Positions 40,601 through 42,675 of a stretch of 49,916 nucleotides of DNA are shown here, one piece after another. The notes under the pieces were generated by a model. It saw only the letters and a program-made list of their open reading frames with translations. It did not search any database and was not told the DNA's origin. Both the position numbers and the translations under genes were made by a program. Within the stretch, counting starts at the first letter, position 1. Every line of letters starts with the position of its first letter. This DNA comes from Ministeria vibrans ATCC 50519 (lineage: Eukaryota > Protista > Filasterea): contig CALSCP010001080.1 in NCBI GenBank assembly GCA_943704425.1, forward strand, positions 1-49,916. Reading direction: 5' to 3'.

Positions 40601-42675
40601 CCTCGCACAAATGCCATTGTGGTGGACATGGCAGTCGAAGGTGGCGCCGACGCAGAGATGGTTGGCGGTGGCGGGTGATGAGGGTCGGTCGTGGTCGTTG
40701 TGCCAGATGTAGGTAGGCGTGGGGCAGCAGCGGAGTCACTTGCTGTGTGCACAGGCAAGGAGGGTGCTGCTGATAGTCCAGCGGGACCTTCGTCCTCGTT
40801 GCTCTCCTCATCAACTGCCAGAAGTTCCGTCGTCATCCGATCCTTCCCTTCTACATCCTCCTCTTCGTCGTCGTCGTGTCCAGCAAGAAGACTCGCCAGG
40901 CGCAACTCGTCCAGTGGAACAGTCTCAAACACACCCGCTCCCGCATTGTAGACCATTCGCAGTTTGTGCATGCGAGTGGCAATGGAGCGGTCTTCCTCGT
41001 CCGGCAACTCTTCTCCACGCAGTGCAGCCACCAGAGCCGTCTTGCCTGCCTCGGTCGCACCCAAGAACAGCACTTTGATCGACCGACACTTTACTGAGCC
41101 ACGTTTCATCGCAGCGGAGAATGCAAGGTCGTACGAAAGAGCACTGCAAAAGAGAACCGAGTGAATCCAAGAAGAAACGAAACCGTTGTGAATATTCGTA
41201 CGCCACCAGTTCTGAGATGGACCATTCCGTGCGAGTGCCGTCTCTAGCGTGGGCAACAAGATGCTCACCGGAGAGCTCAATCTTGACGGGACTATACACG
41301 TTTCAAATAATGAGTAACAAGTCAGAGGTGCAAGTGGGAAGGTAAGTGTACCAGTCAGTCGTTGGAAGTGTCTTGACTTTGGTTCCTTTTGCAGTGCTCC
41401 ACACTTTGATTGTGCCATCCGATGAGCAACTGAATATGGTCTTTCCATCACGAGACACACACACTCGATAGACCTGACTGAAACACAATCCACTCAGTTA
41501 ATTCAACACGTTTCGACATTCACTTACTGCTCATGACCCGCAAAAGTGCGCACATTCTTTCCCGTTTGCACATTCCACACTTTCACTGTTTTGTCGTGCG
41601 AGCAACTGATCACAAGTGACTCATCAGGTGAGAACACTGATGAGTAGACACCACTAAACCAAACCCGTACAGTCAGTTCCATTCTCACGCTGCGCATTCT
41701 CTTACTCTGAATGACCAGTCAGTGTTTTCGTGCACTCTCCACTTTCAGTTGACCACAGTTTGATAGTGTTGTCCCACGAAGCACTGAGAATCGTCTTTCC
41801 ATCAAGTGAAAATCGCACAGACGCAATTTCCCTACAAAACACGATTCCATTTCCAATTCCATTCCCATTCACTCTCTTTCTCTTACCCTTTGTGTCCCTC
41901 AAATGTCTTTTCGCACACTTTCCTCTCAATGTCCCACAATTTCACAGTACTGTCCTGTGAGCCACTCAGTGCTTTCTTTCCATCCGGTGAGAATTGGACA
42001 TCCCACACCCAACTACACCAAAAGAGAATTCAATTCAAACTCAGTCGCAATATCAATCGTACTTTTTGTGTCCCTCAAACGTGAATTCACAGTGTTCTCG
42101 TTCAATGTCCCACAGTTTCACTGTGTTGTCCCATGAGCCACTCAGTGCCTTGTTGCCATTGGGAGAGAACACTCCACTGAACACAAAACTACACAAAGAA
42201 TGATAAACACAAACACAATTGCAATTTGCATTTCTCTTACTCTGAGTGACCTCTGAGTGTCTTATTGCATGCTCCACTCCCAACGTCCCACACCTTAAGC
42301 GTCATGTCTACAGACGCACTGAGAAGACGCGTTCCATCAGGAGAGAAGTTGACACTTTCAATATAACTACGAATGGACAGTTTGAGTTGTGATTGTGATC
42401 GGATTGACTTACTCTGTGTGTCCACTCAGACTCCGCACAAACGAGTAGTCTCTAGCATCCCACACAGTGATGTCATGGCTCCCTCCTGCACAGGCCAGCC
42501 ACTGTTCGTTAGGGCTCAGTGTAAGACCAAAGATCTGATTGGTTCTTCCATTCCAAGAGAATAACGGGAAATCAAACGAGTCTGACCCACTGCTGCTGCG
42601 GTCAAACAGGCCAACCCCACTTGTTCCCGCCTCCGCGTACGCCCATAGCGACTCGTTGATCTTCACAGATCTCAT
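37623..42675 (-). CDS. WD40-Roc-COR-like-caspase-like (peptidase C14) multidomain protein
   Basis: Exons 42675-42413, six 126-nt exons (42366-42241, 42188-42063, 42012-41887, 41831-41706, 41653-41528, 41477-41352), 41291-41202, 41143-40542, 40477-38531, 38482-37623, all joining in frame. Roc motifs [12 protein letters not shown]|[19 protein letters not shown]; C14 motifs [22 protein letters not shown]. Confidence 0.85.

Follow-up and report, generated by a model that had tools for sequence, protein, structure and literature searches.

A WD40 propeller encoded one blade per exon, with hypervariable patches at fixed positions, in a predicted WD40/Roc-COR-like/caspase-like gene family of the marine protist Ministeria vibrans

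A gene on the minus strand of a stretch of 49,916 nucleotides (nt) from the marine protist Ministeria vibrans (contig CALSCP010001080.1; the whole stretch is "the window", and its positions serve as coordinates throughout) likely belongs to a repertoire of germline-encoded candidate receptors for non-self recognition or cell death. Selection on surface patches would have diversified this repertoire, and gene conversion among paralogues probably took part. Six of its exons have exactly the same length, each codes for a single WD40 blade, and RNA joints show them spliced as such. The gene has many relatives in the genome, all complete arrays hold the same number of these cassettes, a few codons per blade change far more than any neutral yardstick, and several variants are expressed.

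The window gene would be a sensor-bearing member of a large WD40/Roc-COR-like/caspase-like family. This family appears to hold the number of blades, their order, their framework and even the introns almost constant, and would confine change to two small patches in each blade: positions 41, 42, 1 and 3 (and 4) in the loop that joins strand d to strand a, and positions 19 and 21 in the turn between strands b and c. Judging from the correspondence with HET-E and with the WD40 profile, both patches would lie on the top, ligand-binding face of the propeller. Diversity would be germline and paralogue-based, generated via diversifying selection on the patches; the scaffold is probably kept homogeneous, and the patches are probably moved, by gene conversion between equivalent blades of paralogues. 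Binding of a ligand to the propeller would then throw a Roc-COR GTPase switch, and this may activate the caspase-like protease.

One blade per exon

Exons and introns were delimited by a scan for GT..AG borders combined with translation of the pieces. Six successive exons, hereafter the cassettes, are flanked by AG..GT and are each exactly 126 nt long: one base (the third of a split codon), 41 codons, and two bases of the next codon. All introns around them are in phase 2, with lengths, in order, of 46, 52, 50, 55, 52 and 50 nt; they start with GTAAGAGA in three cases, with GTAAGT in two and with GTACGA in one. A cassette runs from just past one GHx motif to the next, and spans strands a, b, c and d of a single blade, while the intron falls in the d-to-a loop, where it splits a variable codon. 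Each exon, taken alone, matches the Pfam WD40 profile (PF00400, gathering cut-off 27 bits) with 32.2-38.8 bits, at profile positions 13/14/18-39. Blade 1, in exon 1, scores 23.3 bits, under the cut-off. Cassette by cassette, the residues that follow GHx are YIES, FVFS, WVWD, EIAS, GVYS and QVYR, and the residue that precedes Asp is V, W, Q, W, H and S.

This layout had been proposed in an initial annotation of the same DNA. Translation, PF00400 and the RNA joints confirm its six 126-nt exons in phase 2/2 with one WD40 blade each; the introns do measure 46-55 nt, with RNA joints at all six; and every motif after GHx and every residue before Asp that it had listed was recovered in the translations. 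The whole gene reads as follows, in the direction of transcription.

42941..42971, minus strand: 3' end of an upstream exon, probably non-coding (RNA loose ends, then GTACG)
42677..42940, minus strand: first intron, 264 nt, GT..AG (RNA loose ends); taken as neutral reference
42413..42675, minus strand: coding part of exon 1, with ATG, N-terminal strand and blade 1; ends with GHT plus two bases, phase 2
42367..42412, minus strand: intron 1, 46 nt, phase 2 (RNA joint 42366>42415, the two bases of the split codon being replaced)
42241..42366, minus strand: cassette 2 (blade 2), 126 nt, phase 2/2 (WD40 37.2 bits; RNA)
42063..42188, minus strand: cassette 3 (blade 3), 126 nt (WD40 33.0 bits; joint 42188>42241 skips 52 nt)
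41887..42012, minus strand: cassette 4 (blade 4), 126 nt (WD40 38.8 bits; joint 42012>42063 skips 50 nt)
41706..41831, minus strand: cassette 5 (blade 5), 126 nt (WD40 37.0 bits; joint 41830>41886 skips 55 nt)
41528..41653, minus strand: cassette 6 (blade 6), 126 nt (WD40 37.5 bits; RNA joint 41639>41706)
41352..41477, minus strand: cassette 7 (blade 7), 126 nt (WD40 32.2 bits; joints 41468>41528/41529/41533)
41202..41291, minus strand: exon 8, 90 nt, phase 2/2, degenerate last blade (joints 41291>41352, 41143>41202)
40541..41143, minus strand: exon 9, with Roc-like P-loop GATEAGKT, acidic and proline-rich insert, and DFAG (switch II) (open reading frame, ORF)
38540..40476, minus strand: exon 10, remaining Roc (GTHID) and COR-like region (ORF)
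37623..38482, minus strand: terminal exon, caspase-like Peptidase_C14 domain (Pfam PF00656)

Blade by blade, exon 1 would make blade 1, the six 126-nt exons blades 2-7, and the 90-nt exon 8 probably closes the propeller.

Splicing was followed in RNA contigs, not raw reads, which came from four public runs and were aligned to positions 40400-42800. One of the runs is a poly-A RNA-Seq library; the other three, guessed to be RNA, contain spliced joints. Runs in which the sequence is present derive from marine or algal-culture samples. GT..AG joints are seen at every one of the six introns between 42412 and cassette 7. Joints 41291>41352 and 41143>41202, found in X17, X15 and X20, skip 60 and 58 nt and reveal two more introns in phase 2, at 41351-41292 and 41201-41144 respectively; joint 40476/40541 (X20 record 20) defines the intron 40540-40477. 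At the 5' end, the coding part of exon 1 counts 263 nt from its ATG, an RNA contig of X18 spans 42415-42676, and RNA contigs with loose ends at 42676 (X15, X18, X20) match 42941..42971 at 27 of 30 bases.

Several joints consist of the intron plus a few flanking bases that are replaced; read on the gene strand, these bases make alternative codons 41, 42, 1 and 3. At joint 41639>41706, the intron goes together with 14 replaced bases that read as a VVMA variant at the start of exon 6, while the joints 41468>41528/41529/41533 bring four different sets of junction codons. RVR, VVR and WVR are among the variants found in RNA at the junction of exons 6 and 7, and at least four different junction-codon variants are correctly spliced in run X15. 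Because the junction variants seen in RNA match variants present on other contigs of the genome, several members of the family are transcribed and spliced at the same sites.

Patches that outpace neutral sequence

That the residues after GHx and before Asp vary had been pointed out from the sequence of the window. We find that they change far faster than neutral sites. In the close subfamily of the gene, represented by 13 versions of cassette 6 and 10 of cassette 7, the framework is near-invariant and positions 1, 3 and 19 are occupied by 4-6 residues each; positions 4, 21 and 41, together with the split codon, are less variable than these three. The proportion of nonsynonymous differences (pN) reaches 0.46 at positions 1, 3 and 19, against a proportion of synonymous differences (pS) of 0.11 in the framework, where the ratio of nonsynonymous to synonymous change (dN/dS) is 0.22.

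The youngest pair, made of the window gene and its copy on contig C1443, presents this behaviour with unusual clarity. At codons 1, 3 and 19, 25 of 54 bases differ (46%; pN 0.457), compared with 20 of the 702 remaining exon bases (Fisher p = 6e-20). By contrast, the five WD introns between the cassettes differ at a single base out of 259 (about 0.4%), the synonymous sites of the framework at 2.7% (pS 0.027), and the region 42600-42999, which comprises the 5' exon along with the first intron and the beginning of exon 1, at about 3%. Near-identical introns set against 46% divergence at three codons per blade make an unusually clean contrast. It is repeated in five further pairs, young and independent, which come from other subfamilies and metagenome copies: L057/L058 (19/54 versus 25/702, Fisher p = 2e-12, with introns at 2/281), L053/L056 (p = 2e-15), L017/L018 (p = 1e-3), L057/L065 (p = 1e-8) and L052/L066 (p = 2e-9). 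Patch codons change 4- to 100-fold more than the neutral yardsticks, whether introns, framework synonymous sites or the 5' region, and relaxed constraint at these codons is thereby ruled out. The excess points to diversifying selection, to the import of old variants by gene conversion, or to both.

A large family with a fixed number of cassettes

The assembly totals 29.7 Mb and counts 2860 contigs; the COR-like ORF was matched in it 80 times, at about 45 loci. Copies of the WD40 stretch are found on C1443 (96% identity), on C1507 (85%) and on five more contigs (73-78%), and about 30 short contigs, 91-100% identical, start or end within the WD40 array. Alignment of the C1443 copy with the window is confined to a gene unit of 5.7 kb (window 37200-42942), outside which the flanks differ; this copy is therefore a paralogue, and an allelic origin is ruled out. 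Three copies of the family lie in large contigs with different flanks.

A hidden Markov model of the cassette was applied to 17 loci. Complete arrays consist of blade 1 in the first exon followed by exactly six cassettes, in 14 paralogues out of 14. Cassettes of the paralogues measure 126 nt, a few of them 123 nt, with AG..GT borders and the same phase. Outside the genome, a protein search for relatives returned only eight unnamed ENA proteins, two of which yielded usable scaffolds, both with six-cassette arrays; a scan of a metagenome contig collection for relatives gave none, and a literature search found no paper describing ROCO-caspase genes with one WD40 repeat per exon. All 16 complete arrays (14 paralogous, two metagenomic) have six collinear cassettes over a span of about 50-96% identity, and some are only about 60% identical in the COR part. 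Once the variable positions are masked, cassettes pair with those of the window in the order 2-3-4-5-6-7 in both the close and the middle subfamilies; in the distant ones, the last four can still be identified and keep their order.

Within the window gene, the exons at 42188-42063 and 42012-41887 (exons 3 and 4) are the most alike, with 71% identity both in nucleotides and in amino acids, the other pairs of cassettes being 46-63% identical in nucleotides. The initial annotation took exons 3 and 4 for recent duplicates. The likeness is real, but both types persist as distinct positions in paralogues whose DNA identity is no more than about 74%. The duplication must therefore be old and predate the family, which rules out a recent event. 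The same annotation had suggested a BLAST search for a shared pool of exons, and exons related to those of the window are indeed present in the paralogues. Their number and order, which it had proposed to compare between strains, are invariant across the 14 paralogous and two metagenomic arrays.

Possible exchange between paralogues

The record of relatedness among copies changes from exon to exon. L016 and L004 show one difference in 111 bases in exon 7 and 11-13 in 126 in exons 4 and 5; the window gene and L016 differ at 2 of 126 bases in exon 5 and at 10-13 in exons 4, 6 and 7. Six copies share introns 3 and 4 without a single difference, while their exons differ at 8-15 of 126 bases. In the comparison with C1443, divergence is lower in the WD introns (about 0.4%) than in the 5' region that surrounds the first intron (about 3%). 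Synonymous diversity amounts to 0.267 in codons adjoining the patches, versus 0.096 elsewhere. One and the same patch also turns up in several combinations: VVMA is paired with H or R, and GVCS with G, R or Q. Since relatedness is mosaic exon by exon, blades may be exchanged at the same position.

Conversion or crossover at the same position, with invariant introns and framework as anchors, may be the main source of combinations; the mosaic across exons, the identity of introns 3 and 4 in six copies and the varied partnership of patches all speak in its favour. On the other side, recurrent mutation under selection could mimic reassortment, and the framework has too few variable sites for a formal recombination test. 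We regard blade-wise exchange as main source as a serious contender, somewhat short of an even chance. A bolder version, which we hold to be doubtful, has combinatorial germline receptors whose near-invariant mini-introns, placed in the hypervariable loop, serve to anchor recombination; entire blades, with two specificity patches each, would thereby be reassorted among dozens of WD40/Roc-COR/caspase genes. If it were true, this would be a third solution, beside repeat shuffling in fungal HET-E and LRR (leucine-rich repeat) exon shuffling in brown algae, and it would tie intron position to immune-type diversification.

Downstream domains

The predicted architecture of the window gene is WD40/Roc-COR-like/caspase-like. 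No match to NACHT was found in the gene, where the WD40 part is N-terminal and is followed by the Roc-like P-loop. The Roc part scores 17.8 bits against Pfam Roc (cut-off 27), over the P-loop part only. A profile search of the COR-like ORF against the PDB retrieves the LRRK2 Roc domain weakly (E = 0.12), and a sequence search of the same database returned no relevant match; no Pfam or NCBIfam match was found in the COR-like region. The nearest ESM Atlas clusters of this region all have COR-A and Roc (score 0.95, 186-192 shared features). An AlphaFold model of the COR-like ORF is poor (predicted local distance difference test, pLDDT, 54); its best fold matches are LRRK1 (E = 0.059), the Roc-COR protein of C. 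tepidum and LRRK2, and Foldseek gave no match at E <= 0.001 for this model. The G4 motif of the window gene reads THxD, presumably as in LRRK2. A ROCO assignment is probable, though it falls short of the formal thresholds.

The terminal exon matches Peptidase_C14 (PF00656) with 37.1 bits (cut-off 21.4), and NCBIfam caspase_w_EACC1 with 43.5 bits, under its own cut-off. The predicted caspase-like ORF contains His and Cys motifs, IGHG and DFCNSG. It is separated from the COR-like ORF by a predicted phase-1 intron of 57 nt (38483-38539, GTAAG..TAG), read from sequence alone; the two ORFs would belong to one gene, since they are in the same frame and the sole intervening stop lies inside this intron. 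Exon 10 contains an assembly gap, a run of N in 38700-39000, near 38850, with the same peptide of about 35 residues on both sides. Gap and repeated peptide probably reflect an error of assembly, which makes the ORF look longer than it is.

Other copies and neighbouring sequence

We must add here some observations on the surroundings of the gene and of its relatives. L044 (G000:C1441:54800-59300) is a paralogue, 92% identical in its COR part, with a Roc P-loop exon. Within 4.5 kb upstream it has no WD40 array; instead, a different gene, which has a caspase-like domain, reaches into this stretch with its 3' end, and it follows that members of the family stand in tandem, with at least one copy sensorless or truncated. 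Downstream of the window gene, 36601-36897 is 76% identical to L016:7415-7715, upstream of the C1443 copy. This likeness may be a remnant of a tandem arrangement of the family.

The genome also holds a WD40 array of another kind. At L067:2752-3395 (G000:C2017:48251-48894), directly after a long N gap, lies an intronless tandem array with a 126-nt period and at least 5.1 copies, 96% identical. These copies differ almost only right after GH (SNGVL, SSSVV, TESVV) and around Asp (YDYT, YDNT, YDKT, GDKT). A HET-E-like, internally highly conserved mode is thus present in the same genome as the exon-per-blade mode.

Beyond the 3' end of the window gene, a single ORF at 34049-36178 codes for a PanB-PanE fusion, whose best named relatives, at no more than 58% identity, are from Capsaspora, Thecamonas, Diplonema, dictyostelids and choanoflagellates; the database searched contains no near-identical protein. 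Between this ORF and the window gene runs a long microsatellite of GT/CA dinucleotides (36926-37111).

Alternative explanations

The symmetry of the cassettes invites a quite different reading, in which they are skipped, duplicated or reordered, by alternative splicing or by exon shuffling, to give different propellers in the manner proposed for brown-algal LRR exons. As all cassettes are 126 nt long in phase 2/2, any combination would indeed stay in frame, and brown-algal ROCO genes, with their 72-bp phase-2 LRR exons, shuffling and splice variants, provide the precedent. Against it stand the exactly six collinear cassettes of all 16 complete arrays, at about 50-96% identity, and the RNA: each of the 15 joints listed skips 48-66 nt, that is, one intron with or without flanking variable codons, and none of them, in contigs from the four runs, skips a cassette, though rare isoforms could escape. 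A closed propeller, moreover, generally copes badly with a missing blade, which sets it apart from an open LRR solenoid. We consider this reading unlikely; of the inference in the initial annotation that any exon can be skipped, duplicated or swapped, only the exchange of blades at the same position may hold. Another proposal would account for the patches by local hypermutation programmed to strike their codons, instead of selection on ordinary mutations. In its favour, a pair whose overall divergence is just about 3% shows about 100-fold more change in patch codons than in the introns next to them. Yet neither a template repeat nor a reverse transcriptase nor any base bias was observed, and all base types change while the flanking V and D codons stay. 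Furthermore, the same patch variants recur in several copies, as fits old variants under exchange, and the RNA variants are explained by fixed germline copies. This makes programmed hypermutation very improbable. We give even less credit to the idea that the variable positions are merely unconstrained, or that alleles, a mixture of strains or errors of sequencing create their variety artificially. Many variants do sit on tiny contigs, and the culture may be non-clonal; however, change at the patches exceeds every neutral yardstick, reading frames are open, variants are spliced in RNA and occur in independent metagenome scaffolds, and three copies are embedded in large contigs with different flanks.

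A diversified germline repertoire of candidate receptors is the explanation we prefer, and several points weigh against it. The location of the patches on the top face is taken from homology of positions, and the receptor or cell-death role from domain order and an evolutionary signature. The Roc and COR matches are all sub-threshold. Some of the short contigs could be alleles or strain variants instead of paralogues. The mosaic pattern, which also matters for blade-wise exchange, comes in part from short contigs, the assembly breaking inside the family, where chimeric joins are possible. Finally, rare isoforms may exist, the joints coming from contigs rather than from raw reads.

Significance

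Much has been written on repertoires of innate immune-type receptors in animals, plants, fungi and bacteria. To our knowledge, they have hardly been described in free-living protists. The candidate repertoire of M. vibrans would associate a WD40 sensor and a caspase-like output with a ROCO GTPase, rather than with a NACHT or NB-ARC nucleoside triphosphatase (NTPase). It allows a direct test of diversifying selection acting together with concerted evolution. It is also a reminder that one repeat per symmetric exon is, alone, no proof of exon shuffling: a closed propeller freezes the number of cassettes.

Comparison with known systems

Three systems call for comparison. With HET-D, HET-E and NWD of Podospora, the window family shares a repeat of 42 amino acids, fast residue pairs that flank a conserved residue, and the organisation as a multigene family in which the scaffold is homogeneous while the patches diversify. 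In the Podospora repeats, codons 7, 9, 25 and 27 are under strong positive selection (Paoletti 2007, PMC1805685); they form pairs around the purified codons 8 and 26, in the d-a loop and in the b-c turn, and thus belong to the interaction platform at the top (PMC1805685). In our cassettes, positions 1 and 3 surround V/I2, and 19 and 21 surround D20, with the spacing of HET codons 7/9 around 8 and 25/27 around 26. The initial annotation had likened the variable residues to the variable face of HET-D/E, and this identity of spacing and context argues, by analogy, that the likeness was well seen. Site-specific hypervariability of the kind known in fungal allorecognition genes suggests convergent evolution of recognition surfaces. 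The differences are no less marked. In Podospora a NACHT NTPase is N-terminal to the repeats, whereas the window gene has a Roc-COR-like part; HET-D/E repeats are near-identical within a gene and highly polymorphic in number, whereas the window cassettes are only 46-71% identical in DNA and the family is fixed at six. Unlike in HET-D/E, each blade has its own exon, and exchange, if any, would involve the same positions of paralogues, not all repeats together.

The LRR-ROCO genes of brown algae (Ectocarpus, Saccharina) have one LRR per 72-base-pair phase-2 exon, with shuffling and splice variants (PMC11378527, PMC3341825). Common to both families are a ROCO-type core (a probable one here), one repeat per symmetric phase-2 exon, expansion of the family, and diversifying selection on what would be the binding face (PMC11378527, PMC3341825). 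Unlike in the algae, the repeat of the window family is the blade of a closed propeller, the predicted output is caspase-like, the number and order of exons are fixed, and no splice variants appear among the listed RNA joints. As to LRRK2 and the Roco proteins of Dictyostelium, their polypeptide unites a WD40 propeller with a Roc-COR GTPase, as the predicted product of the window gene would do with its Roc-COR-like part; the window gene differs in having its WD40 part N-terminal, no kinase, and a caspase-like effector, and all its matches to these proteins are below significance. With no NACHT, repeats that are not near-identical, a fixed number of them, and neither shuffled order nor splice variants seen, the window family is like HET-D/E in where it varies and like LRR-ROCO in its exon layout, and is a member of neither.

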